Shown here: piece after piece, positions 55 to 40,000 of the stretch
Layout: each line of letters opens with the position of its first letter
How positions within the stretch are numbered: position 1 is the first letter of the stretch
Assembly (NCBI GenBank): GCA_010909165.1
Contig: VJWM01000192.1
Coordinates: 357,411 to 421,410 of the forward strand
Direction of reading: 5' to 3'
Length of the DNA stretch: 64,000 nt
Source of the DNA: Anthoceros angustus
Taxonomy: Eukaryota > Plantae > Anthocerotophyta
Program-made: the position numbers and the translations under genes
Notes under the pieces: generated by a model
Databases searched by the model: none
Seen by the model: only the letters and a program-made list of their open reading frames with translations
Told to the model about the DNA's origin: nothing

Positions 55-684
55 GTGGCTAGAGGACTCAAAGAGGAGCTCCGCATCACAAGGGAACTCC
101 TGGACCAGCAGCGACAACAATCGAACCACCTTGCCAACGCCTACGGGACGGAGGACAGGAACTGCAGGAAGGAAGTGCTGACGGTCCGGCATACCTTGAA
201 GGCAGTACAAGCCCTCAGGGAGGAACAAGCTAGAGCCACGGCAGTAGCAGTAAAGCGCTTGGTAACAGATGCCAAGAAAAAAGATGAGGAGATTGGGAAG
301 CTCACCTTGGAACTGGAAAGGGCAGAGATCGAAAGAGAGACCGCTGTAACGAAGGTGGCAAATATAGCCGAGTGGGAGGAGCGCGTCAACCCACTACGAG
401 TTAGAATCATGGACGTACAGAAGAGGGAGAGTGGCAGAGTGGCCACTTACTACAACAACCTCTTGGAGACCATCGAGGAAAGATACAACAAGGAGGAAGA
501 GGAAATGGATCTGGCCATCCTAACGCCTAAGGGCATGGCAGCTTTGGAGGCCGAAGTGGCCGGATGGTATGAGGAGAGACGGGCTGTATTGGACATAGCC
601 AGGCAAGCGAGTGAAGAAGCACCCGAGACCACCCCCCGTAGGACCTTCCTTGGTGGGAGCATCGGACGAGGAAGAGGGAGGTAA
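55..684 (+). mobile_element. Coiled-coil accessory ORF of an unclassified repeat element (probably 5'-truncated by the window edge)
   Basis: 209-aa E/K/R-rich heptad-like ORF. It is followed by a T-tract/GGGTGTG motif at ~990 and a further fragmented charged ORF (~1490-2040). No RT or transposase motif seen. Confidence 0.4.
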
Positions 685-3245
685 GCCTGATCCTACCAGT
701 GCATCTACACGGGTAGACACTATGGCGGCCAGGGGAAATTCGTCTTCTCTGAAGGGAGGACAGGAAGAAAGGGGAGAAGACCCCGGAGGGAAAACTGTGG
801 AGCTACCTAAGTCCACTGGTAGGTGTGGAGAGGTAGGAGGTGTACCTCCTACCAATGGTATGGTAGGAGGGGAACCTCCTACGGATGAACCGGTAGGTGG
901 AGCACCCCCTACCAGAGAAGAAGGGGAGATTGTTTCTTCCTGTGGAAGACCACATGTACACTAACCCCTCTCCGAAGTGTCGGGATGAACGATTTTTTTT
1001 GTTTTGGGTGTGTTAGTATAGCAAAGTGCTTTGAGAATCGCTGGTAAGGCCTTTATACGGAATGGTCCTTGGCCCTTGGTGATAATAATTTTCTTTTTTT
1101 CGGACCTTAGGTTTCGACCCCGGATAGGTAGGTCGGAAATAGAGTTCTTGGGTTTTGGTGATTTTTGGAATATGAGGTGTCTATATATGCTAGGAACGCT
1201 GACAATATGCCACAGTTGGGTAGTCAAGTGGGGAGGTGGCCAGTTCCACCACGGTGGCCGAAGAACGGGACGTACAGACCAGGGGGAGTTTACAACCCTA
1301 GTGGCGGAGCTACCGCCACCGAGCGCAATCGAGAGAAGGACACACGACCGCGAGGTCGCGTCCCGTGCCAGACGCCGAGCGAAGCCGGCAGAAAGCCGGG
1401 CGCGCACATGCAAGGCGCTGGGCCGAGTCTTTGTTTCATTGCAGTAGAACGGGTCATGTCGAACGGGCGGTGGCGGCGGAGGAAGGAAACCAGTGGCGGC
1501 GGAGGAAGGAAAAGAGGCGCTGAGGCAAGAGCGCCAGCGCGAAGAGGAGTGGAAGAAGCGTGCAAGGGTGGTGTTCCCTTTTTCTGACCAGCGTCTGCAG
1601 GTGGGTCGAGTTTCTTTTTTCTGGGGAAACAAGGAGGAGAGGGAGGGGGTAGAAACTACTGGCTGCACATCTTGACCGCCACAGGAGTTTACCAGTTGTT
1701 CCTTCGAATAGGAGCTGGCGCCTACCCCCCGCAGGTAGTGCTGGAGGAGATGAGCGAGGCGGAGGCCAGAGCATGGAGGGAGGAGCACACGGTATGGCTG
1801 TCCAGTGAGGAGGAGCGGGACAACGGATGTAGAGGCCACAGGCGCGCAACGCCCACGGAAAGGCGCGAGGAAACCGCAGGCAGCGAGAGCGAGGTGGAGG
1901 TTTTGGGGAAAATCGCTCGGATCAGAGGCGTGGCGGCGAGAGGGACCTATGGGTCAGAGCTGTGCAAGCGAGTGAAGAAGCACCCGAGACCACCCCGTGG
2001 GACCTTCCTTGGTGGAGCATCGGACGAGGAAGAGGGAGGTGGCTGATCCTACCAAAGGCATCTACAGGTAGACACTATGGCGGCGGGGGAAAATCTTCTC
2101 CAAGGAGGACGGGGAAGAAAGGGAGAAGACCCCGGGAAAACCTGTGGAGCTACCTAAGTCCACCTGGTAGGTGTGGAGAGGTAGGAGGTGTACCTCCTAC
2201 CAATGGTATGGTAGGAGAGGGAACCTCCTACTACGGATGAACCCAGTAGGTGGAGCACCCCCGTAGAAGAAGGGAGATTGTTTCTTCCTGGAAGACCACA
2301 TGTACACTAACCCCTCTCCAAGTGTCGGGATGAACGATTTTTTGTTTTGGGTGTGTTAGTATAGCAAAGTGCTTTGAGAATCGCTGGGCGGGCCTTTATA
2401 CGGGAATGGTCCTTGGCCCTTGGTGATAATAATTTTCTTCGGACCTTAGGTTTCGACCGGATAGGTAGGTCGGAAATAGAGTTCTTAGGTTTTGGTGATT
2501 TTTGGAATATGAGGTGTCTATATATATGCTAGGAACGCCGACAATATGCCACAGTTGGGTAGTCAAGTGGGAGGTGGCCGCCCACCACGGTGGTCAAGAA
2601 CATGGCAGGGGACGTCTGGAGTTTACAACCCTAGTGGCGGGCTGGCGCGCGGTCGGGCGCAGGCGAGAGAAGGACACACCCGGCACATGAGGTCGCCAAT
2701 TCGAGCCAGGGGACGTCGAGCTGCGGCAAAAGGCGGCGCCATGCAATGCGCTGGGCCGAGTCTTTGTTTCATTGCAGACAGTAGAAGCGGGCGCGTCTAA
2801 TGTCGAGCGGTGGCGGCGGAGGAAGGAAACCAGTAGCAGTAGCGAAGGAAAAGAGGCTGAGGCAAGAGCGCCAACGGTGAAGAGGAGTGGGCGTGCAAGG
2901 GTGGTGTTCCTTTTTCGACCACGTCGCAGTGGGTCGAGTTTCTTTTCGGGGAAACAAGGAGGAGAGGGAGGTAGAAACTCGCACATCTTGACCGCCATGA
3001 GGAGTTTACCAGTTGTTCCTTGAATAGGAGTCGGCGCCTACCCCGCAGTAGTCTTGGAGAAGAGCGAGGCGGAGGCCGGAGCATGGAGGGAGGAGCACAC
3101 TGCATTATGGCTGGTCAGTGAGGAGGCGGGACAACGGATGTAGAGGCCAGTGGCGCGCACGGAAGGCGAGGAAACCGCAGTGAGGCAAGAGCGAGGTGGA
3201 GGTTTTAGGGAAAATCGCTCGGATCGGGCGTGGCCGTGAGCGAGA
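606..3245 (+). repeat. ~1.36-kb tandem duplication; second copy deletion-riddled
   Basis: GCGAGTGAAGAAGCACCCGAGACC recurs at ~606 and ~1968, and the downstream sequence is colinear. Copy 2 has many 1-nt deletions. Confidence 0.9.
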
Positions 3246-5029
3246 GGACCCCTATGGGCCGTGAGAATCATGAGGCGGCAAATATTGATTTTAGGCAGGC
3301 CGCGACATCATAGGTCCGAGGTTTCCTTTTGGGGTTAGGGGATAGGGTGTTCTGAGAGCCTGCAGAGCTGTAGTTTCCTGGATTGGTAGGGGTGCTCGTG
3401 GTAAGAGCTACAATTTTTAGACACTGGCGATGCGTCTCCTGCTGATTGGCTCCTTCACCCTCTTTTTGCTCATGTCCCCTCCCCAGCTTCTGTCTTCTTC
3501 CTAGCTTGTGGGCCCTACTAGAAATGGGCACCCTATGTTACACTTTATGTTAAGATTTGGACCCCTGGATGTAACACTCATGTTGCAATTTTGGGGTCAT
3601 GTAACACTTTTTGGGCCCCTTGTTACACTTTGGCTTGGAAACCATACTACGGCTGTTGTTGCAATCATGTTGCAATGGTGTTGCACTTATGTTAAGATGA
3701 AGTGAGAGGTGGTTTTTCCCTCTCTCAAAATTGCAACATGATTGCAACATCTAAAGTGTTACAAGAGAGGTCTTGTAATACTTTTGGAGGCTTGGTACCG
3801 AACCTCCTCCCCATCCACCATTGCCCTTTTACTTTTCCCCTTTGAAATACCACGTTTTACTTGGTAGTTACCACCGATACGCCCTTCAATACGACCATAT
3901 ATAAATACCTATACCAATACATCCTTATACTATACGCATGTACTCTACGGTGATAAATGTACTATATTATTCTAAGTGCTATACATTCGTATTCAATTTC
4001 ATATAAAATAAGTTTGTATATTACGCGTATTATATAGTACACTGGTATGTACATATTCATGGTACGATACTTTGTATTTACTATACCTGTAAATAGCGAC
4101 GGCCCTTTATACCCCTACTTTATAGCATGCTGGCTTGCGATTTGTCCTTCCCACGTCACCAATAGCCATCGGCTTCCTGCCATGGCGCCCAAGAAGATAC
4201 TGTCCCCACCTATCACCTTATTGTAACGCATCACAGTGAGGTTATGCCCCTACAAGATTGTGCTGTGCGGAGGAGATTTGGTATCGTTGGCTTATGCTTT
4301 TACGCCTCCATGTAAGGCACTTCCTACTCCATCGTATGCACCTACAGAAACTTCCGCCTCCTGCTCGATTCGCAATTTTCTTCTTCCTCCCCTATGCTCG
4401 CCGAGGCAAGGTTTGCCACTTCCACGCTTCCTCCTCGCCCGCAGTACACGTTGCACATACAAACCAGCATGGCCATCATGAGTTATCGAGCGTTAATGGA
4501 TTTCCACAGCAAAGCTGACCATTTGCCTTACCTTCCCTCCATTCCCTCCTCTTTTCTTCTGCCCTTCTTGTTGGACATTTTCCTCTTCCGTCCTCCTTCT
4601 TCCGGCTGTCGCAGCCCGTGCCCTTGTCACTCGCCCACCGCCGGCTGCCGCCTCTACTCCTCCTCCCGTTTTCCTCTTTCGGCCTCCAACACCATAATAT
4701 TTGAACCGGCGGAATATACGAACCGAAAACCCGGACCAAATTGGGTTCCCATCCAAATCGTAGTCCGTAAGTTTAGTGCTTGAGGTTTGCGCATCCCGTT
4801 TTGTGGGTGCTTTCACACGAATGTGGGTATGTTGGTGCATTCGGACCTCTCAGACGGTTTAATGTCTTATAGGTGTGAAACGAGATCTACGGATATTTTG
4901 CAGCCAAGAAGTCATCCTTGACAAAACGAATAACAATGTCACTCATAGTTAAAGAAGGAAGAACGGCGCGGCATGCGCCTGCCTTAGTTCTAACCATGCG
5001 TTATGGTACTTTCAAAACTAAACTAGACT

Positions 5030-7578
5030 CACTTCCCCTCGGGGATTCTCGGCTTGAGGCGTGGCTCGGAGGCATTGTCCCGACACGCTATCTAACACAA
5101 CTTCCGTCCTTCGAGTCGAGCATCCTCGGGATCCTCGAAATTGTCGTTTCGACCATAGCATTTCCGTGATATCGACCGCATCCTCCTTGCTCTTCTCCAA
5201 ATAGTCGGGATGCCACAATGCGAGACGGTTTCTTGGCGATCATCTATAAGATCTCCGTCTTCTCTTTCATCCCGCTCAACCCAAGTGGGACTACGGGCTG
5301 GGATGCATCCTTCTCGGACAAGCTCAATTCTTTTGCCCGACTGGGTGGGGCCTCGGCGGTGTGGCTCATGGGTCAACTCCTCCTCTGCGTCCGGTAAAAC
5401 TTCATAGCCATGAATCCTTTGCGGAATGAACTCGCAGGCTTTGTCAACCTCCACGGCAATGCAATTTCGCCACAAAGGAGTGCCGCTAATGTCGTTGTTC
5501 CACTCCACGCATGCATCTAATATCCAATCTCCTTCTGGAGAAGTTCTTGATCAACTTCATCATTAGACCCGGTGGCCTCGATGCGGAAACAACCAGCTTG
5601 TCGACATGTATAATAACTTCTTCACCACGGTGTGTGTGCAATAACCGCCGCCCATTATTGAAAGAGCCACGCAAGGTATTCGAAAGATGGACACCTTTGT
5701 CTTCTTGCTCGTGCGGTCACACCCACCCCACGATGATGTACTCCATGTCAAAGCCTCCTTGGTCATTGTGCATATTAGTTTTGTCCCAAACAAATGAGAC
5801 CATGCCTCCACCTGCACACCACTTCCTCATACTCTCCCTGACAATATGCAGCTCTTCCACACCATGCATTACTATCATTCTGATCTCGTCGCACATTGTC
5901 ATATCATGGAAGGAATGAAATATGTTTGCCATTTGCGCCTGCTCAAGTTTGACATCATACTTCCCCTTGTTGAATCCCCTGGGGACATCCATCACCAGCG
6001 TTGTATACTTCCGACTCCAAAGAAACCCTCTCATTTCTGCCACATCTCTGCGCACCACTTGATACTTCACTAACTCCTCTGTTTTGGGCACAGTAAAAGA
6101 TTGCAGCCCTTCCTCCATGTCCATGTCCGCAAGTGCCCTCTGCTCATCCTCCAGCCCTTTCCATGTGTGGACCTCTAATATAAAAGCACGGAAATCTTGG
6201 TAGCTTTTTCAGGTCTTCAACATCTTTAACTTGCTGCAAAATAACACAAAACAAGTGAGGTTGCCGAAAGTCAGATTGCGGGGACAATAGGGAAAGGGAG
6301 GGCGCCGGCATGCCGGCGCCCTCCAATAGTTCTATACTGGTAAGAACAGCAAAACTCACCTTCCCTTCGAAAGCGGTCTGAAATCTGGCAATGACTTCAT
6401 CCGTTGAGTGCACCGGGTACTCCTTCCTCACCATCTCGAATGAATTGCAGCCTAGATGCTTCGCCATAGCCACTTGGATCACATGTAGTTTCTTCCGAAG
6501 AGTGATCTCCTTGGCCATACCATTGAGGTCTATGAGACCTGTCACGACCTTCTCAGTGACACTGATCAACATCTTTTGGCCAGTCTCACCCGGTGGAATA
6601 CCCTGAAAACTTCGCCAAGGCTTCCCTTGCATGTCCTTTGGCTTCACAAAACTTTGGTCCACCGACTTCGCCTCATCCGCAGTCTTCCGTTTCCCCTTGC
6701 TCTTTTTGCTTGTCCTGCGGCAACATGTTTGGCTTGTTCTGGCAATTCCATGGCCTCCCACTTCGTGAAGATCTTATCGACATTTTCCCACACTCTCCCC
6801 TCAAGTTTGGCGATGCAAAGGATATGTGTGCGATTGTCGACCTTGTTTTGCTTGTACTGCTCATCCTCTCTGGCCTCATCATCATCTATCAAGCCCAGCA
6901 CCTTATATAGGTTGAACTTCCAGTTCATGGTCATATTGACTCCGTCCCTTTTTGCTATCTGCAACTCATCTCGCAGATACCGAACTTGCTCAATGAACGT
7001 CATCTTCCTCCGTTTGTCAGACATGGTGTTGTGGTCTGTGGCCAGAACCCTCATCTCCTGTAAGTGAGCCCACAATAGACATGGGCTTCCATCCATTGGA
7101 ATCTCGCCTTCGATGGAGATATGTCTGCCAGATGCTTCATCGCTGCATAGGTGTGATTGCCCCCGAGCACTCCCATCACATACTTCTTGGCTCTAAACTT
7201 ATTCCAGTCTATAGATTGAATGTCGCTGCAGTCCGATGGGTCAATCATGCACAGTAGAGGCAGCACACCTTCCTCAACCCGACCTTTCGAAATAACTCGA
7301 GCCAGGTAGTTGGTCCATGCCTCGTCCACAATCCGAATCTGTGCATCTGGAGTAAGAAAGGATGCAGGCCTTAAATTCTCTAGCTTCAGAAGAACTGTTT
7401 CCGGAACCACTTTCTTCGCGTAAGCAGACTCTCTGATATTTCGCAAATAATCTTCATCCTGGATGGAGGCCTCCAGCCTCTCCCCATCAGTCGCAACATG
7501 TATAGTCGGAATATCGCTGGTATCGGCAGCTCCTGCTACGACAAACAACATGGCAATGGTGGACGGCAGTGGGAGCAT
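5030..7578 (-). pseudogene. ParB/Srx-like domain fused to a beta-class N4C/N6A DNA methyltransferase (frameshifted as assembled)
   Basis: Stitched from ORFs 7051-7578, 6644-7096, 6144-6761, 5717-6124, 5486-5674 and 5092-5508. ParB-like part: IRIVDEAWTNYLARVI..PLLCMID..GVLGGNHTYAA..EAHVYCGLT..EMRVLATDHN. MTase part: TLVMDVPRG (motif IV position), VSFVWDKTN..MEYIIVG, RPPGLMMKLIKNFS-EGDWILDAC-SGTTTLAALLC-RNCIAVEVD (motifs X and I). Candidate GTGAGT..TTTGCAG intron at 6359-6234. Confidence 0.75.
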
Positions 7579-7628
7579 TGCAATTAATTGTGCCTCTTTC
7601 TACACAGCTGTCAACACTGTAGGAACAC

Positions 7629-7658
7629 GTCGTGGACTCATACGTTTGAGTCCACGAC
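7629..7658. other. Perfect 12-bp inverted repeat (hairpin) upstream of the ParB-MTase start
   Basis: GTCGTGGACTCA-tacgtt-TGAGTCCACGAC. Confidence 0.85.
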
Positions 7659-8586
7659 TGGTCGGGTACATGGTGCTTGGCATGTATGGGTTCGACCGTA
7701 CATTCATGCTAATTGGGAATATAGGGGATTTCTCGACCGTGACGACATCACCATGTCATGGATTCCCATATGGCACATGCCCTAGGATACCCACTACATG
7801 AAAAAAGAGGCTAGACGTTTTCGCGTTTGCGCAACCCCAACCGGGCGTGAGGACGAGTGGAACCCGCAATTCCACATGGCGCGAGGGTTCCAACATATTT
7901 TAATTTCATGGAGCATTGGAAAATGGCGCGAGGAGAGAGGCCAATCGGACCACACATGGGATGGCTTGGATCTACATTATTCAAAGCCGGTTCACGATCC
8001 CGATCACCAATGAAACAAGAAATGGGGACATGGGTTGGCATAGTCTCTCCCATACCATCTGTTGTTACGTTTTTCTTCACCATAACAAGAACTACAACAA
8101 AAAAACGTTACATATCCACCTAGTTTGTAGTAGTGAATGATGCCGGTGAAGGGGAAGACCAATGTATACGTAGAGGAAGTGTTCAATCTACCTTCGCCTG
8201 CGTCGAAAAGTGTTTTCAGTCAGGAAGGGGGTGGAAGGAATGAGAAGTTCATCTAGTTGGCCATCTCAAATTTACAAGCAAAGTAGATAGTAAGTATGAT
8301 GCAGCAGGGATTGTCTCTGCTTTGCGCATGGCTAGCAAGTTTGTTGGTCTAATGTCTCTGCTTCGTGTGTGGCTAGCAAGTTCGTCAACTTGAGGATCGA
8401 CATGATAGATATTGCCAGCTTGATGGGATCTTGAGGTTTGTCGTGAAAAGTTTTACGTTCATGAGTTTGGAGGCTTTGCATACTTCATATAGTGTAGCAT
8501 TTCCTTCCTTCCAGCACATAAGTGAGCATTGGGCGCAAGTGAGCTGCACCTTGAAAACATATAGGTACATATATATACGGTGAAAG

Positions 8587-8633: not shown

Positions 8634-9380
8634 CACCAATAAATAAATATTTTTAGTGCTACATGGTACAAAATATGTATAAATCAAAGACTGGAGAAAA
8701 AAATTAAAACTTAAACCTCAAAAAACAGACGGAGTAACGCACTGGTGAAATAAGGTAGAAAGATGAAAAATTAAAAGAGGTAAAAGCATTGGTAGCTGCC
8801 CTATTGAGAAGATGCATGTATTGCATGCTTCATGCAATCTCTTATTAGAGAGGAATTGCTGCAGCCACTAATGAAGAGCTGCCTAGGTCCGAGGATTCTT
8901 AGTGCTTAGTGATCTGCAAGAATCCCCTGATTTAGTAGCTGCTTAGTTGAGGCGAGCCTGCGGGATACATGAGCGCTAGAGCAAGGGCTTAGTATCATTG
9001 AGTTTAATGTGCGCTACAAGCCTTGTGTTGAGAGAGTTATCCACAGCTTAAAAGTGAGCTTGTCATTGAGTCAAGGGCAGTGGCCAGTTGGGCGTAGATA
9101 GCCAGACGTATGCAAGTCGTCAATTAACAGCAGGCTACTTGGAGCCTTAGGCTCCAAGTACTAGGCACAGCACAGCACACGATACAACACTAGGCTAGTG
9201 CTGTGTCGTGAGATTGAGAGTGCTGAGAGTTGTGCAAGTCTCTATGTGGAGTTAACTAGAGAGGTCCTAGACCGCTGGGAAACCAGCACTTGTCGCTTCC
9301 TTACTGGCTGTGTAGTTAGGGGCATGACTGATGTGCACTTTCAATACATCATATGGGCGCGCTCATAGTTTTTAAAATGT

Positions 9381-10478: not shown

Positions 10479-11650
10479 TTAAGGTGAATCTTGAAAGTGC
10501 GTATGTGAAGCATTATGTACTTGGAAAAGATTATATTTGGGTCTACCTGCTGCATCTGCAATTCCCCAATGCGTCTCCACCGGATTAAAAAGATCTGGTT
10601 TTTGATTTTCATCTGTTAAACCAAAGAGAAAGACAGTCAAGTGGCGGTGTGGTCTCATAGGAGTTCCCTCTCCCCTGTTCAAGTAGTTCACAAGATTTGC
10701 GTTGTAGCGATGTGCATTCGCCACATTAGCATATTGATTACCACTAGTAGGCCATCCCGTTTCTGAAACTATAATTCTCATATGCGGGTGACCTATTTTG
10801 CTTAAAGCCGATACGGCGTAGTCAAAAGAAGCTTGAAAAGCACTAGGATAACTCTGACCTTGAACATGATTATCTTCGAAAGCCCAATTAAAGGGATAGT
10901 TAGAATTAAGAGCATAGAAAGGATATATATTAATTGAAAATGAACCATTATATTCATGGAAGAAGTTTGCTATATCTCTCATGAGGGGTAATACCTCTTC
11001 CCTGAATGCACCATTGAGAGGATCATTAGAGGGGTCAGGAGCTATCACATCACCACTAAAGGGAATCGTGAGCTTTACAGAATGTAAATTGTTCGAAGCT
11101 AAGACAGAGTGCACATTGTGAAGTGCACTCATCACTTGTGGGCCACGAGCAACAAAATCTGACAAATTTGGCAAATCTGGCTCATTGCCTAATGCAATAT
11201 GGCTGTGAACACAGAGAAAACGCTCATGAGCATACATGTTTATCAATTATTATTAAATAATGGATGCATAAACCACAAAAATATAAAAAATGTAGGTTAT
11301 ACTCACGTGATACTTGCTCCTCCATTCACATAAGGTAGGATATTTGTCCGAACCCAAGAATGAGCGAAATCTCTATCCGCCATAGCTGTTACATTCTCAT
11401 TTGAACATCCAACCATGACTTCTAGCCTTGCATGGTTTGTTAACTCGTGTAAATATGGATGATCTGGTTCAAAAAACTTGATTCTATTGAATCCATATTC
11501 ATGTATCAAATCAATACCATGTCTTGGGTTGAGTGGATGTGAGGACATCATCCCCCAATTAATACCGATCCCTTCAATTTGCGGAAAGTATGGTAATCTA
11601 CATAATAATAATAATATAAATTGTAAGAATAAAGTTCTTCTCAAAGCCAT
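10479..11650 (-). CDS. Glycoside hydrolase family 17 endo-beta-1,3-glucanase, secreted; 2 exons (11650-11307, 11202-10479)
   Basis: Signal peptide, then IGINWGMMSSHPLNP, acid/base ALGNEP, INIYPFY, nucleophile VSETGWPT and HWGI. The GTGAGT..CACAG intron joins in frame (T|HIALGNE). Confidence 0.92.
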
Positions 11651-14007: not shown

Positions 14008-15453
14008 GCCCTGGGTATCCGGTCGGCTTTGGCTACCAGAGTGCGTCCGAATTGGTTGAGGTGCGGCAATGCCCCCATGTTTTTTGTAATGTATGTAATA
14101 TTCGATGAGAGAGATGCAGGCCTACGACTTTGGTCAAGTGCGGAATCCATGAAGCCAGCCAGGTAGTTTAAAGGTAGAAGGCCAGCCTGGTCTTGAGTGA
14201 CATGCGGAGGAAGATGTCCGTGGCTGAAGGGTATGTAAGGGCCAGGGCCTGAGGATGAAACGCAGATCAAGCTGATTTGAATTATCCTTCACAGTGTCAA
14301 TGGCTTTGCACGCGGCTGGCAAGGGATGAGTGAGAAATTGATGGCACGGGAGAGGGCACATTCGGTGGAGATGGGGCAGCTGGTAATGCCAAGGCGACTG
14401 GCATTGGCCATTTGTTGGCTGTTTGTTGTGCAGCTCTGTGTGAACGTCGCCTCGGCCTGCAACCCAAGCGACCGAGCTGCATTGCTGGCCTTCAAGGCGG
14501 AACTATTTGACAGCTTGGGGACGCTGGACTCGTGGGTGGAAGGCGGGGACTGCTGCAATTTCTACGCTGTCACCTGCAACAAGCAAGGCAGGGTGGTGAA
14601 CCTCACCATCGTGGTGCCGGAGCTCGGGGAGGACTGCGACGGGGTCTACGATATCTGCGAAGTTGTGCAGCGCACGGACAACAGCTCGACCCACAACTTG
14701 CTGGGCAGGACCATCTCCAAACTCTCCGCCCTGGGTATCCGGTCGGCTTTGGCTACCAGAGTGCGTCCGAATTGGTTGAGGTGCGGCAATGCCCCATGTT
14801 TTTTGTAATGTATGTAATATTCGATGAGAGAGATGCAGGCCTACGACTTTGGTCAAGTGCGGAATCCATGAAGCCAGCCAGGTAGTTTAAAGGTAGAAGG
14901 CCAGCCTGGTCTTGAGTGACATGCGGAGGAAGATGTCCGTGGCTGAAGGGTATGTAAGGGCCAGGGCCTGAGGATGAAACGCAGATCAAGCTGATTTGAA
15001 TTATCCTTCACAGTGTCAATGGCTTTGCACGCGGCTGGCAAGGGATGAGTGAGAAATTGATGGCACGGGAGAGGGCACATTCGGTGGAGATGGGGCAGCT
15101 GGTAATGCCAAGGCGACTGGCATTGGCCATTTGTTGGCTGTTTGTTGTGCAGCTCTGTGTGAACGTCGCCTCGGCCTGCAACCCAAGCGACCGAGCTGCA
15201 TTGCTGGCCTTCAAGGCGGAACTATTTGACAGCTTGGGGACGCTGGACTCGTGGGTGGAAGGCGGGGACTGCTGCAATTTCTACGCTGTCACCTGCAACA
15301 AGCAAGGCAGGGTGGTGAACCTCACCATCGTGGTGCCGGAGCTCGGGGAGGACTGCGACGGGGTCTACGATATCTGCGAAGTTGTGCAGCGCACGGACAA
15401 CAGCTCGACCCACAACTTGCTGGGCAGGACCATCTCCAAACTCTCCGCCCTGG
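14008..15453 (+). repeat. ~719-bp near-perfect tandem duplication of the LRR promoter and 5' CDS
   Basis: GCCCTGG occurs at 14008, 14728 and 15447. Only one homopolymer indel was noticed between the copies. The first copy gives truncated ORF 14326-14808. Confidence 0.93.
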
Positions 15454-16247
15454 AGGTGCTCTCCCTGACGAACTTTCTCTTCTTTGAGTCCCTGCCCACG
15501 GGGCTGGGTAAACTCAAGAATCTCAAGGTCCTGCGCCTGGAGGAGGCTCTCTTCTCGGGGCCACTCCCCCCAGACTTCGCCAACCTCACCTCCCTCACCG
15601 AGCTCAGTCTCCGGGTGAACGATCTCAACGGCCCCCTCCCAGCCTTCCTCTGCGACCTCCACAACCTGGTGAGGATCGATCTGTCCCACACTTCTTTCGC
15701 AGGCCCCCTCCCGGCTTGCATCGGCCGCCTGCGGCAGCTGGAGCACCTGCAGCTGGCCTACAGCTCTCTCACCGGCCGCCTTCCTGCCTCCCTTTCCGCC
15801 CTGCGCAAGCTCCAGGAACTGAATGTGACCGACAACCAGTTCAGCGGTCCCCTTCCCAGACTGGCCAAATTTCCGAGCCTGAGGTTGCTCGGCCTGGACG
15901 GCAATAAATTTGTGGGCACCATCCCACCGCACTACGGCAACCTCTCGTCCCTAGTGGACTTCCGTCTGGGAGGATTGAACGTCTCTGCGGAGTCCGCAAA
16001 CGAACCAGAGGTCGTGCTCTACAGCAAGCTGAAGGGCACCATTCCCCAACAACTGGGTGCCCTGCAGAAGCTCCAGGTGCTTCACATCCGAGCCAGCAAC
16101 ATCCACGGCGTCATCCCGCAATCCTTCAGCACCTTGGTCAAATTGGTGGATTTGGAGCTGGATCGCAACCGCCTCAGCGGCCCGGTCCCCGACTTCTCCA
16201 AGCTCACCAAGCTCCAGACGCTCCAGCTTGAGGACAATCTGTTCTGA
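15045..16247 (+). CDS. Secreted extracellular leucine-rich-repeat protein (PGIP-like), intronless; true start may be a downstream Met (~15090-15105)
   Basis: Signal peptide, LRRNT cap (CNPSDRAALLAFK..SW..GGDCC..VTC) and ~9-10 plant LRRs (LxxLxLSxNxLSGxLP). No transmembrane or kinase domain. Confidence 0.9.
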   Translation: MSEKLMARERAHSVEMGQLVMPRRLALAICWLFVVQLCVNVASACNPSDRAALLAFKAELFDSLGTLDSWVEGGDCCNFYAVTCNKQGRVVNLTIVVPELGEDCDGVYDICEVVQRTDNSSTHNLLGRTISKLSALEVLSLTNFLFFESLPTGLGKLKNLKVLRLEEALFSGPLPPDFANLTSLTELSLRVNDLNGPLPAFLCDLHNLVRIDLSHTSFAGPLPACIGRLRQLEHLQLAYSSLTGRLPASLSALRKLQELNVTDNQFSGPLPRLAKFPSLRLLGLDGNKFVGTIPPHYGNLSSLVDFRLGGLNVSAESANEPEVVLYSKLKGTIPQQLGALQKLQVLHIRASNIHGVIPQSFSTLVKLVDLELDRNRLSGPVPDFSKLTKLQTLQLEDNLF

Positions 16248-18765: not shown

Positions 18766-21700
18766 TGTTTATTTTGCGAGGAGCGAAAAACAGACTTTGT
18801 AAAATGATAAAACAAAAAGTGTGTGTCCAAAAAGTACATATGGCCTCACTATATATGTAACTCAAAAACGGTTCACATGACGAACCCTAACTAGCCGCAC
18901 CCTTTTATATTTAACACTCCCTCTAAAGGTAAGCTAGGTTAGGTTAAACGCGTTCACACCGCTCTGAAAACGTTACGCCCGACTTCACGCTGTCAGTGTA
19001 CCAGTACGCGCGAGCCTAGCGTAAACTCCCGTCGCCATAAGAATCCTCCAGACTATCCTCTTTACCATTTCTGTACTCAGCTTCGTTTGCGTCTTCATCC
19101 TCGAGCACTACTCCACGCAGATAACTGAAAGCATGAGAACTCGAAGGGGAACGAGCTACGAGTGCCCTGAAGTGTATTAGAGAAGGAAAAAAGGAAGGAG
19201 AATCCATGAGAAGGATTCGTGTCATGAATCACCACTGTGGACACCATGTCCCATTGAACAACCGGTAGCTGCGTGTCATCCTTCGCCACTAAACATGGTC
19301 CTTTGCCGGGGTCGAGGCGAAAGGACGGAGGAGCAAGAGCATCCAACGGGGATGCGCTACTCCATACATGCGGCCCCAATCTTGGCTACCAAGCTAAAGA
19401 TGGCCATGGAAAGAATAACAGAGCTGGAGCTTATGCTGGCTGACGGCAGGGCACCACCGCCGGGTGACAAAGAGCAGGATGTGAAGCCTGCTATATGAGA
19501 GAAGTATCGCGTTGCCAGGAGATTAGGTCTTAAGGTAAGCTTCATCCTCCCTGCAAGGCTATCCATCTCCCTCTTTCGTTTCACTAACAGGAAATGTGTG
19601 CAGTGTCAGCAGCTCTTGTGTGCCTCCAAGGAAGACTGAGGGCACAACACAATTCCCAAGGGAACCTTCGGGTTCCCACCCCACCCCACCACAGATAAGT
19701 TATCCGAAATACTTGGTATAGTCGTCCAGGCCTAGCCCTGAAAGATGTTGGTAGTGTTTATGCTTTGCCAATCCTTTCGTTAGCACATCTGCGACGTTAG
19801 AATCTGTGTGCACATAACCCACCTTCACGACTCCGCGCCCCACCACATCTCTAATGTAGTGATGTTGAATTTCTATATGCTTAGTGCGGGCGTGAAAACG
19901 TGGATTAGCGACAAGGGCTAAGGCTGACATGTTATCACACATGATAGGGGTAGGTGTCTGGGTCTGGTCGAGGTCATGAAGGAAGGTCCTTTCCCATTCA
20001 CCTCCTTTGAAGCATCATCAATGATTTGTACTGCTTACATGGAAGGCAGGCTATGGAAGATTGCTTCTTACACGACCAATTCACAGCAGCGGAAGATAAC
20101 AGGAAGTAGTATGTGGAGAGACTTTTTCGAATCGACGCCACGAAGATTGAACCCCTAAGGTAAGTTTCACTGCCTAGTCCTTCGATAGAAGAGTCCATAA
20201 TTGTGGGTTCCTTTGAGATAGCGGAAAATCCGCTTGAGAGCCCAATGTGTTCTTCCCGGATTCTCCGAAATTGTGATACTGCTTACAGATCGGATATCCG
20301 CCTTGTCCAGCTAAGAAGATTAGACCGCCGATCGATGTCTCAGAGGGGACATCCTTCATGTCCTTAATTTCTTCCTGGGATTGTGGGCACTGGAGACTGG
20401 TAAGTTTCACGCCCATAGCGAAAGGAGTAGTCGAGGGTCTAGCTTCGTCAAGTTTGAACTTGTGCAAAATGTCATTGATATATTTATGCTGGTGAACTAT
20501 CAGCAGCCCTTCCTCTCGCACTTAAGATTTGAACTCCCAACAAGATTTAAGTTCTCCGATGTCTTTCATCTCGAACTTGGTACTTAGCTTATGCTTAACA
20601 TCGCCAACAGAGTGTTATCGGCAAGAATGACATCACAACATATAGGCTAATATGACGAAGCCGCTTCCTTGACTGAGTCGGTAAACATTAGAGTCTGCTG
20701 TGCTTTGGACAAAGGATATACTGAGCAGGAAAATATGCATAGTGATATACCATATTCGGCCACTTTGTTTTAGTCCATATATACTTTGTTTTAACTTGAG
20801 CAGTTTAAGCACTTTGGTGGGATGTTCAGGATCTTCATATCCTTCAGGCTGTGCCATATACAGGTCTTCATCCAGGTCTCCATAGAGGAAGGCCGTGCAC
20901 ACATCCATTTGCTGTAAGTCAAGGTTCAACTCTGTTGCAAGAGCCAGCAGTATGCGAATGGATTGTGCTCGAACAACTGGTGAATGTTTCCTGGTAATCT
21001 AGGCCCTCAACCTGGGTAAATCCTCTTGCCACCAGTCTGGCTTTGTATCTGGCAATCTCCCCTTTGGCATTGAGTTTAAGTTTAAAAACCCACTTACAAG
21101 AGATGGCTTTGCGTCTAGGTGGGAGGTCAGCGATTTGCCAGGTCTTGTTCTTGAGCAAAGATTGGTATTCATCCTCCACTGCTACCTGCCACTTGGAGCA
21201 ATCTGGGCCATGGAGGGCTTCCTTGTATGATAGGGGTTCCTCGGCAGGGAGGATATTCTGTAGCACCAAAAACTGCCAAGACGTTCGAAAATCGATGGAT
21301 TGATAATAGGGTTCTAACCACTGGTCTGGAGGTGGCCTATGGCGTGTGGAACGTCAGAGGTTGGTTCAGGATCAGAGTCAGGTTCTGAATGCTGAACAGG
21401 GTCCGGTGACATCCTCCTCATCAGCCGAATTTGAACTATCATTTGCAGTGAGATCATCTGTTGGTTCACCCGGGTCTACTGTAGGGTGAGGGTCAACAAC
21501 AGGGGGAGCCTCTACTGAGTCATCTACATTTGCAAATGGAAGGTTAGGGGGTTCTTCTACGTCATCTGTAGGGAAGGTGACAGTATCAAAGCTTTCATTT
21601 GCATCTACTCCCTCTAAGGGGTTAGAGGGTGTGGGGTTGGTAGTCAGTGTGCAAGGTTCTATGAAGGTGACACTGCGGGCAAGGACTAATGATTGAGTGT

Positions 21701-24700
21701 CAAGGTCATAGAGTTTGTACGCTTTCACATGTTCACTGTACCCCACAAAAAGGAGACGTTGAGCTCGGTCCTCTAACTTCTTGCGTTTTTCTGCAGGAAT
21801 ATAGGCGAAGGCCTTGGATCCAAATACTCGGAGGTGGAGCAAACTAGGATTTCGATGCCAGAAAACCTCATAAGGAGTCTGTCCAGTGACAGAGCTGGTA
21901 AGTATCCTGTTAAGTATATACGTGGCTATAACAATAGCCTCCGCCCAATACTCTTGAGGTAAGTTGGCATGAAGTAGCATACTCCTGGTCATTCCAAGTA
22001 GCGTCTGATTTTTACGTTCAGCAACTCCATTCTGTTGCTGAGTGTATGGAACAATAAGTTGTCTTTGAATGCCCTGTTCTTGAAGGTAATCATCAAAGGC
22101 ATTGTTGACAAATTCTGTCCCATTATCACTGCGTAGGACTTTAAGTAGGCATCCAGATTGTCTTTGTGCAAGTGGGAGCCACTGCTTAAAGTGCATGAGA
22201 GTGTCGCTTTTCAGGTGCATGGGAAAGGTCCAGGAGTACCGACTAAAGTCGTCCGTGAGGGTTAGATAGTACACTGCTCCACCTAGAGATGGCTCGTGGA
22301 TCTTTCCAGAGATATCAGCATGCACAAGTGCAAGGATCTTGCTCTATGTGCGCTTTGGGGAATGGTAGCTCCGCTTGGCAAGGATGCACGACTCACGATG
22401 GGAAGATCCTAAAACAAGCGGTAGGGGTTCTCTGTGGCAACCTATGCGTGACATGTCAATAAGTTTATGCACATTAGCGTGTCCTAGCGTGCCACAGAGA
22501 TGCTAAGCGGGTTGACTTCACATTGACAGGAAACGAAGAATGACTTACAGGATGAGGAGAACACCTCAATTCTAACCTGTACAAGTCATGGTCGAGGATA
22601 CCTCTAAATGCACATGCGCCAAAGGAATTCTTCACAGCAGCAGCATCATCGACACGTATCTCATACGCTCGTCGCATGATCTTGCTCATTGAGAAGATTC
22701 TTGGCCATTTCGTGTACAAATAGAACTCCATCGATCTTCAAAGTTGTGTTGTTGTCGAGAATGCAGGTACATTGCCCATGTCCTTCAACTTTAAGGCTAG
22801 TGTCACTCCTTTCATCACCAAGCGGACTTTATCCTTCATTCGCACATTGTTAAACTAGAAAATAAATTCTTGTTGTTGCGAGATATGAGCGGTGGCTCCC
22901 GAGTCCAAGAACCAATCATCATGGCGTGTGATGAAGTTGTCATCGATAGTGAGGATCTTCACGTAGCCTTAGAGTTTTCTCCTTTCTCCTTGACAACAAC
23001 ATTCGACGGTCTTGTGGATTGTGGTCGTTGTGGCTCACCACCTTTCTTCTTGCGGCACTCACGTGCCCAATGTCCAATGACACCACACGATTCTGATTTC
23101 TGTCCGCTTGGGCACTCGAGGAAGATGGGGCACCATCGACCCGACCACCAGTGTCCTACCCTTCGATTTCTTAAACCGAGCGGTGAGCACCTTGTCGCTT
23201 TTGTGCATGGGAAAGGTCCGAGTACCGACTAAAGTCGTCGTGAGGGTTAGATAGTACATGCTCCACCTAGAGATGGCTCGTGGATCTTTCCGGAGATATC
23301 AGCATGCACAAGTGCAAGGATCTTGCTCTATGTGCGATTTTGGGGAATGGTAGCTCCTTCTGTTTGGCAAGGATGCACGACTCACAGATGGGAAGATCCC
23401 TAAAACAAGCAGGTAGGGGTTCTCTGTGGCAACCTATGCGTGACATGTCAATAAGTTTATGCCTGTTAGCATGTCCTAGCTGTGCGTGCCACAGAGATGC
23501 TAACTGGGTTGACTTCATATTGACAGAAAACGAAGAATGACTTACAGGATGAGGAGAACACCTCAATTCTAACCTGTACAAGTCATGGTCGAGGATACCT
23601 CTAAATGCACATGCGCCAAAGGAATTCTTCCCGTAGCAGCATCATCGACACGTATCTCATACGCTCGTCGCATGATCTTGCTCATTGACAAGATTCTTGG
23701 CCATTTCGTGTACAAATAGAACTCCAGCGGTCTTCAAAGTTGTGTTGTTGTCGAGAATGCAGGTACATTGCCCATGTCCTTCAACTTTAAGGCTAGTGTC
23801 ACTCCTTTCATCACCAAGCAGGACTTTATCCATCATTCGGCACATTGTTAAACTAGAAAATAAATTCTTGTTGTTGCAGATATGAGCAGTGGCTCCTGAG
23901 TCCAGGAACCAATCGTCACTGGCGTGTGATGAAGTTGTCATACAGATAGTGAGGATCTTCACTGTAGCCTTAGAGTTTTCTCCTTTCTCCTTGACAACAA
24001 CATTCGCTGACGGTCTTGTGGATTGTGGTCGTTGTGGCTCACCACCTTTCTTCTTGCGGCACTCACGTGCCCAATGTCCAGCGGCACCACACCAGTTACA
24101 GTTTCCTGTCCGCTTGGGCACTAATGAGGAAGATGGGGCACCATCGACCCGACCACCAGGTGTCCTACCCTTCGATTTCTTAAACCGAGCGGTGAGCACC
24201 TTGTCAGTTTTGTTTCTAGATCCACCAGTGGCAAATAGGCGTCCTTGCTCTTCCTGAAAAAGGGCACCAATAACTTCTTCAAGCTTAATGGTGACAGGTT
24301 ACCAGCAGAGGATGCCTGGTGAGCAATTCGGATGGGTCCATTTTGTGTGGAAATAAAGTTTTGGTAGGAGGAGGGGAGGCTGCTCAACAGTTGAGCAACA
24401 GCCTCTACCTCGTCCATCTTGCAGCCAAGGGCAACTATTTGAGCTCTCGATGGCGGAACTTGGTGACATGAGATGCCACTTTGTCTCCCTCCCTCATGCG
24501 CAGCCCATAGAATTCTGCTGGCTGCACATAGGGTAAGAATATTATGTACCCCATATGTGGCTGCAAGTTGATTCCAAATCTCCGAAGCACTGGTGAGATA
24601 CTCGACATCAGGTACGAGGTCAGCATCCAGGCCTCCAATAAGTAGAGCAAGTGCTATTGAGTTCAGTTGGTCCCACTTTTGGATGTCATTAACTGACGGG

Positions 24701-26293
24701 GGAGGCGAGGAGTCGGGGTCAGGTTTCTTAAGTGTAGCATCGACCACGCCCACACCTCGCAACCAAAGTGGACTTCATGCGAACTTTCCAGACTTGGTAT
24801 CTTGTTCCATTGAATCGATCCTTTTCTTTGAGTTCAGAGGTAAAGGATGGTCCTGCAAGATTGGGAGACTGTCCCGAGCCAGAAGCCATAGACGAGGTGG
24901 TATTCTGCCCGGATTGTAAGTTGAGACGACCAAGTTGTTGTGTCAGTTGATCTATAGACGCTAGGTACATGCGTAATGTGACCCTCCTTGAGTTATGACT
25001 CGTGGAAGAGAAAACACTAATTACAATGTTACCGTGCTGATTGACTTTCCTTGCAGGACTTCTAATACGTGATTCGCAAGGAGGGAGGTATTGGGTTTAT
25101 GCCAGGATACACATATGAATATATAGCTATCCATCTGCCCTGACACAGACTCAACACTAATCCCTCCTAGCAAAATGAGAGCTAGAGGTCAATAATTGGC
25201 AATGTCATTCGACTGGCAGAATATGATAAGGTAAATCTTGACGCTTAATAAAAAATGCCAGTTGTTAGATTGTCAAAGTGCTCTTGGTGAAGAGGTAGAA
25301 CCTAACTAAACCGTCGCGTATCCAGATTGTGTGAAGAGGCGCGACCGGTAGGTTCTCGATCCTGAGGTCCTGAGATGCGAAAGAGGGTCGACGCTCCAGC
25401 TTGATGACTGCTCGAGTGACATGGAGGATGCCAGGCGATGCTTCATCAAGATTGGTGACGTTCGGCTCTCGCCCAGCGCTGGCCTCCGCCTTCAGGAAAT
25501 GGTCAAGATGCAATCACCGGAGGAGAGATCGATGATTTCTCTCCTCTGGCGCCCAAGCTCAATCTTTTTCATGAGATCAACCACTTCATTGATCTGGTAT
25601 TTGATTGAGCTTGATGTCGCTGTGATTGCTCGTCCTGACAGGTTATCAAGGTGATCGACTGTGGTCTTAATTTCTTCCTGATTTGACAGCACTTCAGATA
25701 AGGATCTCTCGACCCTAGTGACGCTTGCAAGTAATCCCGGCGTCTTGATCACTCTTGTCGCTGGGTGCAGGACAATCACATGGTGGTTCTGGACGGGAGG
25801 AGCCGTGAGGATTTGTTGATCGGCTATGAAACAAATCCGGGTTTTGACCCCTCCTAGCGCATCTTTGTCTGTATAGATTGTCAACCATGTGATTCCTATT
25901 GGGCTGTAGTGGACGTGATCTGCGTCCTGGTCCTGAGTGCCTGTCAGCGAAGTCCTTCAGCCAGATGTAGGGGTCATCCTGTTCATACAGGTCTAGAATA
26001 GCTTCTAGGGGGGCGCCATGTGCTTGTGGAGGAGAGATTCCTCCACGGCGAGTGCGGCAGCCTCTTCTATACCACCTACGCGGGCTTCCGCGACTCAGCA
26101 TCATTCAGGGAAGATAGAATCCAGAGCTGTGCTCTGATACCATGTTTATTTTGCGAGGAGCGAAAAACAGACTTTGTAAAATGATAAAACAAAAAGTGTG
26201 TGTCCAAAAAGTACATATGGCCTCACTATATATGTAACTCAAAAACGGTTCACATGACCAACCCTAACTAGCCGCACCCTTTTATATTTAACA
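18766..26293 (-). mobile_element. Full-length Ty1/Copia LTR retrotransposon (Copia-1)
   Basis: 151-bp LTRs at 26143-26293 and 18766-18916 (TG..CA, 1 mismatch). PBS TGGTATCAGAGC at 26142-26131, PPT AGAGGGAG next to the 3' LTR. Gag (UBN2-like, CCHC CNWCGAAGHWAREC), protease WFLDSGA, integrase (21378-22325), RT ([16 protein letters not shown]) and RNase H (HARTKHIEIQHHYIRD) are in Copia order. No clean TSD. Confidence 0.96.
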
Positions 26294-37089: not shown

Positions 37090-40000
37090 ACCAAGAGTTG
37101 GTTGTGAAGAATCATTCCAAGGAGGTTCATTTTCTCAAGGAGCAGATGGCTCACTTGAGCACTCCGTCTTCCTAGCCTATTTCTTAATTATCAGGCATCA
37201 TGGCGACTGATTCTATCTCAGATAAGTTACAAGACAAAGATAGGCTCACCTCATCTAACTATGATGCCTGGTCTTTCCGGGTGAAATGTATATTAGAAGA
37301 GAGACTGTTGATGGACGTCGTTGATGGTACAATTCCCAAGAGGATTGCTGGAGATGACTCAGGCTCTCTCTCACCTGGAGGCATAAATAAGAAGTTATGG
37401 ACTATGAAGGATGAAATGGAGTGGAATCATAAAGATCGTAAGGCAAGGACTATCTTGGTGGCATCAGTCTCACAAGAGATGATCCCACATATTAAGCTTA
37501 CCCGATCCTCAAACGAGGTCTGGACGCTGTTGTCGGACACTTACGAGTCTAAGGACATTATGTCAGAAGTTGCTGCTACAATGCATTTCCAGAATCTTCG
37601 AATGAAGGAGAGTGACTCAGTAGAGAGTCACGTCGCAAGATTCAGAGCAGCAAGAGCTAAGTTGGCCTCATGTGGAGTGATTCTATGTGAATCCAGAGCA
37701 GCAGTTCAGTTGTTGGCCTCTCTCCCTCCAAGTTATGAACAATGGAGTTCCAGCCAACAAGCTTCTGCCACTGTTACTCCTGCAACTGCCTCATCTCCTG
37801 CTACAACGAATTTAACAGTTCAGAAGATAGTGGGAGCTTTGTTGCAGGCAGAAGCCAATCGAAAACATATGAACATCAAAGCAGGTGGTTCAACTTCTCA
37901 CCGTCAAAGTGACACTGCGCTCTTCTCTCGTGGGAGATTTAGAGGCAGGGGTCGTGGACGTGGAGGCTTTGTACGCGGGAGAGGACGTGGTTCCTTCGCC
38001 GGTCCTAGCTCTAGTTCACAAGGAAGTGGGAAGAAGTCAGGTAATTACAATTATTGCAACAAACCTGGACATTGGATAAAGGATTGCCGAAAACGCATGG
38101 CTGATGAAGCGTCTAAGGGGAAACAACCAGAAGCAAATGCAACCAGAGCTTCTACACCTGGACTCCTGGTCGCATGTTTGTCTTCGTCTGCCAAAGACTC
38201 ACAAGTTTGGTTTTTAGATTCAGGTGCTTCAAACCATATGTGTTCCAACAGCAGATCTTTTGTCTCTTTTGAACCAGCCCCTGCCAGTCATGCACGTGCA
38301 GTTGTGTTAGGAGACAATTCAGAACTTCCAATTAAAGGAATGGGCACTGTAGTTGTAACACTTCAGAATGGTGACACTCTGCAGCTAGAAAATACCTTAT
38401 ATGTACCACAGTTGACTAAAAACTTGGTCAGTACTATGGCGTTAGGTAAGACAGGCCTGTATAGAATTGTCTTTGAGGGTTTGCAGTGTGTAATCTCTAC
38501 TGTTTTGTCTCCTCTGGAGGTCATAGCTCGCGGCATACCCATAATGACTTGTATGTCTTAGATTTTGTTTCAGTAGCCCGTCATGAGTCTGCACATGTTA
38601 TGGATACACCTTTGTCAAAATCTGCTCTAGCATTTAGATGGCACTGTAGATTAGGTCATCCCAACATTGAGGCCATGAGAAGATTATTGAAAGAGAAGAT
38701 GGTAACTGGTTTCTGATTCGACATACGGACTTGGAACTTTGTGTTGCTTGTGTTCATGGCAAGCAGTTCAAGTCTCATTTTGAATCTGGTAAAACAAGGA
38801 AGGCAGCAGAGGTTTTAGATCTCATCCATCTTGATATATGTGGCCCCATGTCTATGCCCTCTTGGGGAGGAGCCGGATATTTTGTTGTTTTGAAGATGAT
38901 AAAACACATTTTACGATATGAGTCTGAAACACAAGAGTGAGGTGTTTGTGATTTTAAGAGATACCTCGCTTATCTTTGAGCGCCATCTGGTGTCAAGTTG
39001 AAGTGTATCCGTTACGATAGCGGCAAGGAGTACCTCTCAAGCGCCTTTGGGAATCTTGCCAAGGCGAGGGATTACCAGACAACTCACCATTCCCTATCAC
39101 TCTGATATGAATGGACGTGCTGAAAGACGACATCGTACCATTCAGGATGCTGCCCGCTCTCTTTTGTTTCAGGGGAGGCTTCCAATTCGCTTCTGGGCAG
39201 AAGCGGTGCAAGTGGCTACATATTTACAGAATCGTACAGCAATTTCTTCTTTACAAGGATGTACTCCCTTTGAGTCTTGGACAGGAGTCCGACCTGACAT
39301 TTCCCATTTGCGTGTTTTTGGTAGTATTGCCTATGCACATATCCCAGACAAGTTACGTCATAAAATTTCTTTTAAGTCAAAATGTCATGTGTTTATAGGA
39401 TACACTGCAGGCATCCATGGCTATAAGTTGTTCGAACCTGTTTCTCGGCGAGTTGTCCATGCTCGCACTGTGGTCTTTGATGAACGCTCTCTTTTGAAGC
39501 CTCCTGTCCTTTCTGAAGATGATACGTTATTTGGGTCAGTTCATGGTGAAGCCCTTGTTCCTCCAGAAGTTGAGTTAGCTGATTCTGACCTTAGTGATGT
39601 TGCAGTTTTTCCGGAGTTTGATCCGTCTCATCCTGATCCTCCTGATTTGGATCTGACTCCTCCACCAGTTGACCCTCCCGCACCTGCAGTGCCTATTGAG
39701 CCAGATCCCCCTGTTGAGCCAGATCCCCTTGTTGAGCCAGATCTCCCACCTCCTGTTGTTCCAATTGCTCCCGACTTTGCTGTTGATGACCCGGTGGAGT
39801 ACGTCATCCCCCCTCCAGATCCTGATGCTGCTCCTTTGCGTCGTTCTGCAAGGCATCACAGGAGTAGAGATCAGTGGCTTGACCCACCTTATGAAGCTCC
39901 GGACTGGCGGCCTATTGCACATCGACCTGTTCCTCGGACAGTGGGAGTTCGACCCGATGAGATTGTTGGGGAGTTTGTTCATGTCACCGTTCAGCCTGGC

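Follow-up and report, generated by a model that had tools for sequence, protein, structure and literature searches.

Because they combine a ParB-like domain and a DNA methyltransferase in one transposon-borne protein, the accessory genes of certain algal elements are the closest described counterparts of the gene considered here. The Sola1-1_Ec32 transposon of the brown alga Ectocarpus, 21.5 kb long, encodes a ParB-methyltransferase accessory protein of 1104 aa, and it has been suggested that accessory proteins of this sort act on the transposon that carries them, by binding to it and modifying it (Dinatale et al. 2025, PMC12477816). ParB-like accessory proteins lying by tandem inverted-repeat arrays in Plavaka elements, with a red-algal ParB/oxygenase example, are described in a Bostrychia preprint, and ParB-fused Dam-type methylases have been noted in chlorophytes and chytrids (Iyer et al. 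2016). A gene of this kind lies on the minus strand of a 64,000-nucleotide stretch of the plant Anthoceros angustus (assembly GCA_010909165.1, contig VJWM01000192.1, positions 357,411 to 421,410; this whole stretch is called the window, and positions count from its first letter). The locus is most probably (about 0.85) a decayed, transposase-less remnant of an accessory gene that belonged to a family of cut-and-paste DNA transposons. Because of the precedents just named the ParB-plus-methyltransferase architecture is not new, and the view in an original prediction, made from the letters of the window, that it was uncharacterised is superseded by the Ectocarpus publication. The Ectocarpus gene, like the window gene, joins a ParB-like domain and an N4C/N6A amino-methyltransferase in one protein, and it sits on the strand opposite the transposase, as does a relative described below. 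The likeness is one of description: the window gene is shorter (~790 aa), broken, without transposase or terminal inverted repeats (TIRs), and in a plant.

The chain of minus-strand open reading frames (ORFs) from 7578 to 5092 yields a read-through of 789 aa, with an X at each of seven breaks (Table 1); the ORFs listed earlier, and every motif quoted from them, were all located on this strand. Searched exhaustively with HMMER against 1.84 billion representatives, the 175-aa N-terminal piece matched five proteins only: two of Chara braunii, two from Logan assemblies and one spurious repeat protein. One of the Chara matches, GBG86584.1 (P0001), is annotated "DNA methylase N-4/N-6 domain-containing", and a second search brought in P0017, a metagenome protein of 789 aa, together with about 18 paralogues from Chara. 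Scored at 125 bits, the alignment of the read-through to the profile of this Chara/metagenome family is colinear and runs from the ParB-like domain as far as motif I (profile positions 124-735). A sub-profile restricted to the methyltransferase gives 38.8 bits; the highest score among 2000 shuffles was 9.1. When P0017 was compared with all 1629 six-frame segments of the window, with no joining, five colinear pieces were the top five matches (E values 2.6e-7, 5.8e-6, 1.6e-3, 0.02 and 0.39, the third and fourth being the two methyltransferase pieces). In light of the colinear alignment and of these five pieces, the match is well beyond chance. The Chara paralogues and P0017 are thus colinear with the window gene over its ParB-like, middle and methyltransferase parts, with 30-37% identity in the first of these.

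The part between the two domains had been described as a linker of ~330 aa. A linker is present, its length is ~275 aa, and it contains a conserved region (6641-6360) that matches the family profile with an E value of 3.4e-11; an Atlas search with this region was uninformative (best score 0.60). Just downstream of it lies a GT-AG intron, as the prediction of an intron-bearing eukaryotic sequence would have it, in a plant context. On its removal the length agrees with that of the family at this point of the profile alignment. The gene for the Chara protein P0009 is intronless at the same position.

The methyltransferase half takes its identity from the relatives. PF01555 was found in seven of the eight family members tested, the best at an E value of 6.1e-10 and 39.9 bits (cut-off 26.7), and against the Protein Data Bank (PDB) the family profile matches 5hek, an adenine methyltransferase of the M1.HpyAVI/DpnA type, at 7.9e-8, with weaker matches to M.RsrI, M.MboIIA, CcrM and an N4-cytosine methyltransferase chain (E 0.11). 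The motif order is the permuted one, the DVPRGF of motif IV (5998-5972) preceding the motif I region (5532-5443) on the minus strand, so that the beta-class assignment made at the outset stands: motif IV comes before motif I, and the relatives match PF01555. Between the two, SRPPGL…NFS of the window aligns with QKPYTL…KFS of the family. The window gene shares with beta-class enzymes (PF01555; 5hek, M.RsrI, M.MboIIA, CcrM) the succession of motif IV, W-x-K-x-N, QKP-type motif and motif I; it differs from them in having lost the second proline and the closing aromatic residue of motif IV, in a split motif I and in a broken frame. Through the relatives, the fusion of a ParB/sulfiredoxin-like N-terminus with a beta-order, PF01555-type amino-methyltransferase appears real, a solid but transitive conclusion.

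For the N-terminal domain the evidence is structural. An AlphaFold2 (AF2) model was made of P0003, the nearest relative of the window N-terminus, from a 13-row alignment that included the window's two pieces, and its core has a predicted local distance difference test score (pLDDT) of 75-90. The 43 PDB structures that Foldseek ranks highest for the model are almost all ParB, Noc, KorB, PadC, SbnI or sulfiredoxin. VIA-align superposes the model on ParB N domains with Z of 7.0-7.5 and a root-mean-square deviation of 2.3-3.0 Å over 73-77 residues, unrelated rows reaching Z of at most 3.2; these values, below 8, are graded middling by the aligner's own note, and they belong to a relative and not to the window domain. 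The modelled relative thus matches the fold of the cytidine-triphosphate-binding N-terminal domain of bacterial ParB, Noc and KorB and that of sulfiredoxin, and on the strength of this model the window's N-terminal domain probably has the ParB/sulfiredoxin fold. It is nevertheless not a canonical ParB, because the arginines of the GERR motif are absent: in place of GERR the relatives and the window carry G-G-(N/G)-H, which in the window is G-G-N-H. Where bacterial ParB has GERR and EN, the window thus has Gly-Gly-x-His and HN. The 1825-aa gene model of P0001 contains two ParB-like units (~93-300 and 1097-1260) and probably represents two neighbouring copies of the family that gene prediction has joined.

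Several results weigh against these assignments. None of the seven ORF pieces gave a relevant match to Pfam or NCBIfam at E values up to 1, PF01555 included; phmmer found no PDB match for the two methyltransferase pieces, and the 135-aa methyltransferase piece matched nothing in a word-based protein search. Pfam's ParB_N matched neither the window pieces nor P0002, P0003 or the Chara family, and a profile of the ParB-like domain retrieved nothing relevant among PDB sequences. Both assignments are therefore transitive, since the window pieces themselves have no direct Pfam, NCBIfam or PDB match. A full-length AF2 model of P0017, built on an 8-row alignment, had a pLDDT of 43 and was not used. 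The HMMER comparison with PF01555 and ParBc proposed earlier is consequently borne out for the relatives with respect to PF01555 but for the window pieces with respect to neither, and the predicted ParB/sulfiredoxin N-terminus is supported by the modelled structure of a relative and not by any sequence profile. In the same vein, the Chara and metagenome relatives have DFPYG and reach the PF01555 threshold, whereas the window gene has DVPRG and reaches none.

Three-frame reading and alignment to relatives place six frameshifts and one in-frame TGA within 2.5 kb, and because of these lesions the copy as assembled is, by its sequence, dead and cannot make a working enzyme. A split of the S-adenosylmethionine (SAM)-binding motif by frameshifts at ~5470-5540 had been noted, and breaks were found at ~5535, ~5507 and ~5467, such that motif I (F-x-G-x-G) is not intact in any open frame; three further frameshifts lie upstream, and the junction at 5719-5717 proves to be the in-frame TGA and not a frameshift. 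An alternative splice acceptor was considered as a rescue of the frameshift at ~6186, and none fits the frame.

It might be supposed that the breaks arose in assembly and that the living plant carries an intact gene, in which case a host or transposon enzyme writing N6-methyladenine (6mA) or N4-methylcytosine (4mC) would be at work. All the frameshifts are of 1-2 nt, some breaks fall in or near short homopolymers (a T4 run near 6186, an A-rich stretch at ~6715), and domain order and most motifs are kept, with no large deletions relative to the family. However, the TGA is a substitution-type lesion, and motif IV reads DVPRG, with arginine for the family's tyrosine. Six indels in 2.5 kb also stand against the ORFs elsewhere in the window that run for 1.2-1.36 kb without a break and match Pfam strongly (a leucine-rich repeat (LRR) protein, Copia gag, integrase/reverse transcriptase), and a short-read contig from X1, a low-depth DNA run, is identical over 6096-6208, that is, across the ~6186 frameshift. 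In view of the clean ORFs and the identical contig the breaks are not general assembly noise, although X1 is possibly the assembly's own sample and hence not independent proof of the indels. No RNA was found on 5030-7578 in the sole RNA run listed for the organism, an absence that rests on one small run. Intactness in the living plant is accordingly very improbable, and the candidate working DNA-modification system of the original prediction is not sustained in the face of six frameshifts, a premature stop, a DVPRG motif IV and no RNA in the listed run.

That a copy dead as a protein gene might still be used as RNA, for example as a source of small RNA silencing live copies of the family, has a single point in its favour, namely that the copy belongs to a multi-copy family. 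No contig of the listed RNA run lies on the copy, and the window holds no inverted duplication of the gene; a role at the RNA level is likewise very improbable, and the locus is better read as a decayed accessory gene.

The canonical motif IV of beta-class enzymes is DPPY, in the general form (D/S/N)-P-P-(Y/F/W). The family consensus is D-F-P-Y, and the D-V-P-R of the window, with arginine in place of tyrosine, falls outside the general form. No variant in the motif IV codons is among the X1 read variants listed, at most a hint of a state common to the family, and L001, the Logan contig nearest to the window N-terminus, has the ParB-like part only and so gives no readout of motif IV. Judged by its motif IV, which is of the D type, and by its best matches in the PDB, the family would seem to lean toward N6-adenine rather than N4-cytosine methylation. 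It is unlikely, if conceivable, that D-x-P-R-G is the conserved state of the family in A. angustus and not decay of this copy. Were it so, the product of intact copies would be a beta-class methyltransferase fold guided by ParB and carrying arginine for tyrosine, and this would represent either a new catalytic variant by which a land plant's transposon DNA is marked, or a methyltransferase fold that has come to read DNA. This motif is the sole point with potential for novelty, and only if it is conserved in intact copies.

Relatives of the gene are carried by cut-and-paste transposons. A metagenome contig, L002 (1-8915), has the appearance of a complete element, 8.85 kb long and bounded by 28-nt TIRs (20-47 and 8844-8871, 96% complementary). 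It carries a DUF7869 transposase-like gene (170.9 bits), two genes without a name and, on the strand opposite the DUF7869 gene, the intronless 789-aa ParB-methyltransferase gene that encodes P0017; arrays of a GACCGATAGCGATATACG-type inverted repeat (2254-2373, 3613-3642 and 5676-5941) lie beside and between the genes. The suggested link to a transposon thus gains substance from a TIR element in which a DUF7869 gene lies beside the ParB-methyltransferase gene. In A. angustus itself, 251 short X1 contigs of 85 to >99% identity fall on ~5240-7380 (and on 4300-4700), and none on the flanks 4836-5237 and 7382-7783. Because the contigs pile up on the gene body and not on the adjoining flanks, the gene body (~5240-7380) is a member of a multi-copy, diverged family in its genome. 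X1 also contains a 209-nt contig identical to the flank 7855-8063.

The window does not supply the rest of an element, and this counts against calling the locus a transposon remnant. Neither a DUF7869-like gene nor any other transposase was detected in the flanks or in the whole 64-kb window by tblastn, phmmer or Pfam searches of flank ORFs. Around the gene there is no convincing pair of inverted ends, the single bracketing pair found by seeding being 78% complementary, a chance-level value. Since element ends were not found in the window, the term rests on the relatives and on copy number. On the 5' side of the gene, the side that carries the transposase in L002, a stretch of 2.9 kb gave no domain match and a GH17 fragment follows it; the 3' side has a cluster of short palindromes and a tandem repeat of 1.34 kb.

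The ancestral protein, of ~790 aa, would have consisted of a ParB/sulfiredoxin-fold domain with GGNH for GERR, a helical conserved middle region and a beta-class PF01555 domain. As judged from intact relatives, its gene would have stood between TIRs, with a DUF7869 transposase-like gene as its neighbour on the other strand and with element-specific inverted-repeat arrays close by. By analogy with the algal accessory proteins, the ParB-like domain may bind the element's own repeats and the methyltransferase may mark the element's own DNA. The window copy performs none of this.

Each of the two domains is typical of mobile elements in prokaryotes, and the sequence might on that account stem from a bacterial or phage contaminant, or from a very recent transfer, rather than be plant sequence. 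This is exceedingly improbable: a canonical GT-AG intron interrupts the gene, the contig runs on from it into GH17, LRR and Copia sequences, its nearest relatives are nuclear proteins of Chara braunii, and many diverged copies occur in reads of the same organism. The GH17 and LRR ORFs are probable host genes, and in light of them the contig is plant nuclear DNA, so that the earlier view of a eukaryotic plant sequence, and not a contaminant, is well founded.

MpDN4MT1a/b of Marchantia and N4CMT of bdelloid rotifers are amino-methyltransferases of prokaryotic type that eukaryotes acquired horizontally and that write 4mC. The motif IV of DN4MT1 is TSPPY (10.1101/2021.02.12.428880), and the window gene, with DVPRG, is not like it. 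DN4MT1 is moreover a single-locus host gene expressed in sperm, whereas the window gene belongs to a multi-copy family, and for neither DN4MT1 nor N4CMT has a ParB-like domain been reported; the N4-cytosine chain in the PDB is, as noted, a weak match to the family profile. Because the copy is dead, the locus alone matters little. It adds as a data point that a gene described in a brown alga, with mentions also in green and red algae, is multi-copy in a plant genome, and it documents a copy with a D-V-P-R catalytic motif. Searches for plant DNA marks other than 5-methylcytosine would be better served by intact copies of the family than by the one in the window.

Table 1. Parts, motifs and lesions of the ParB-like/methyltransferase-like pseudogene, in window coordinates
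Feature	Position	Strand	Basis or remark
Whole ParB-like/methyltransferase-like pseudogene	5092..7578	-	ORFs, 789-aa read-through, 125-bit family profile alignment
ParB/sulfiredoxin-like domain (probable fold)	6971..7497	-	blastx to P0003, P0002 and Chara proteins; AF2 model of P0003
IRIVDEAW	7338-7315	-	motif located in sequence
PLLCMIDP	7260-7237	-	motif located in sequence
VLGGNHTYAA (GGNH at the ParB GERR position)	7170-7141	-	motif located in sequence
EAHVYCGLT	7089-7063	-	motif located in sequence
Frameshift 1, inside ParB-like domain, …VYCGLT / QEMRVLATDHN	7063/7060	-	family unbroken: GLT-x-x-E-A-R
QEMRVLATDHN (HN at the ParB EN position)	7060-7028	-	motif located in sequence
Frameshift 2 zone, exact site not fixed	6644..6773	-	both frames open; lysine-rich, poorly conserved
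Middle region, conserved	6360..6641	-	common with Chara proteins (P0001 1321-1421)
Intron of 126 nt (GT-AG, phase 0) between …TAFEGK and QVKDVED…	6359-6234	-	pyrimidine tract before AG; in frame, stop-free
Frameshift 3, …LPRFPC / FILEVHTWKG	~6186, zone 6144..6208	-	three-frame reading, family alignment
Beta-order amino-methyltransferase-like domain	5443..6184	-	methyltransferase-only sub-profile, 38.8 bits; relatives match PF01555 and PDB beta-class methyltransferases
LVMDVPRGF, motif IV position	5998-5972	-	family: (I/L)FDFPYGF
FVWDKTN	5794-5774	-	aligns with family TWCKPN
MEYIIVGWV	5746-5720	-	motif located in sequence
In-frame TGA within methyltransferase domain, …EYIIVGWV*PHE…	5719-5717	-	three-frame reading
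SRPPGLMMKLIKNFS	5581-5537	-	aligns with family QKPYTLYSWLVNKFS (HPTQKP-type motif)
SAM-binding motif I region, broken	5443..5536	-	reads GDWILDAC / SGTTTLAALLCG / RNCIAVEVD
Frameshifts 4-6, cutting motif I region	~5535, ~5507, ~5467	-	last two a compensating pair
GDWILDAC	5532-5509	-	motif located in sequence
SGTTTLAALLCG	5504-5469	-	motif located in sequence
RNCIAVEVD	5469-5443	-	motif located in sequence
C-terminal tail and stop, unconserved	5092..5442	-	ORFs, three-frame reading

The sequences next to the pseudogene have features of their own. A pyrimidine-rich stretch at 4300-4700 has the highest summed depth of X1 contigs (up to 325) and is a separate high-copy repeat adjoining the pseudogene. 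At 3536-3760 short inverted motifs, TGTTGCAAT/ATTGCAACA and GTTACAC/GTGTAAC, are clustered: these 225 bp hold 11 of the 30 TGTTRCA/TGYAACA matches of the window, together with a perfect 20-nt inverted pair (3657-3676 and 3730-3749). On sequence grounds the cluster, 1.3 kb from the ParB-like gene, could be a miniature inverted-repeat transposable element or an array of binding sites of an element. The tandem repeat occupies 590-3230, with a unit of ~1.34 kb in at least two copies that are ~90-100% identical over matching blocks; it is purine-rich on the plus strand (GC skew +0.17 to +0.23), and its long ORFs have no Pfam match.

Farther along the window, the GH17 ORF (beta-1,3-glucanase type) lies at 10479-11246 on the minus strand, and two plus-strand ORFs with LRRNT_2 and LRR repeats at 14326-16247. 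Two Copia-type long terminal repeat retrotransposon bodies, with gag, zinc knuckle, Pol beta-barrel, integrase and RVT_2, are found at 21378-24762 (minus strand) and 37200-40345 (plus strand). The segment 48000-52000 is G+C-rich (0.60-0.64); its two strands carry long overlapping ORFs of up to 419 aa, without a Pfam match. At 57861-58421, on the plus strand, residues 1-38 of an ORF match the start of LMWPc, the low-molecular-weight phosphotyrosine phosphatase domain, at an E value of 4.6e-12, and the ORF is probably one exon of a host gene.

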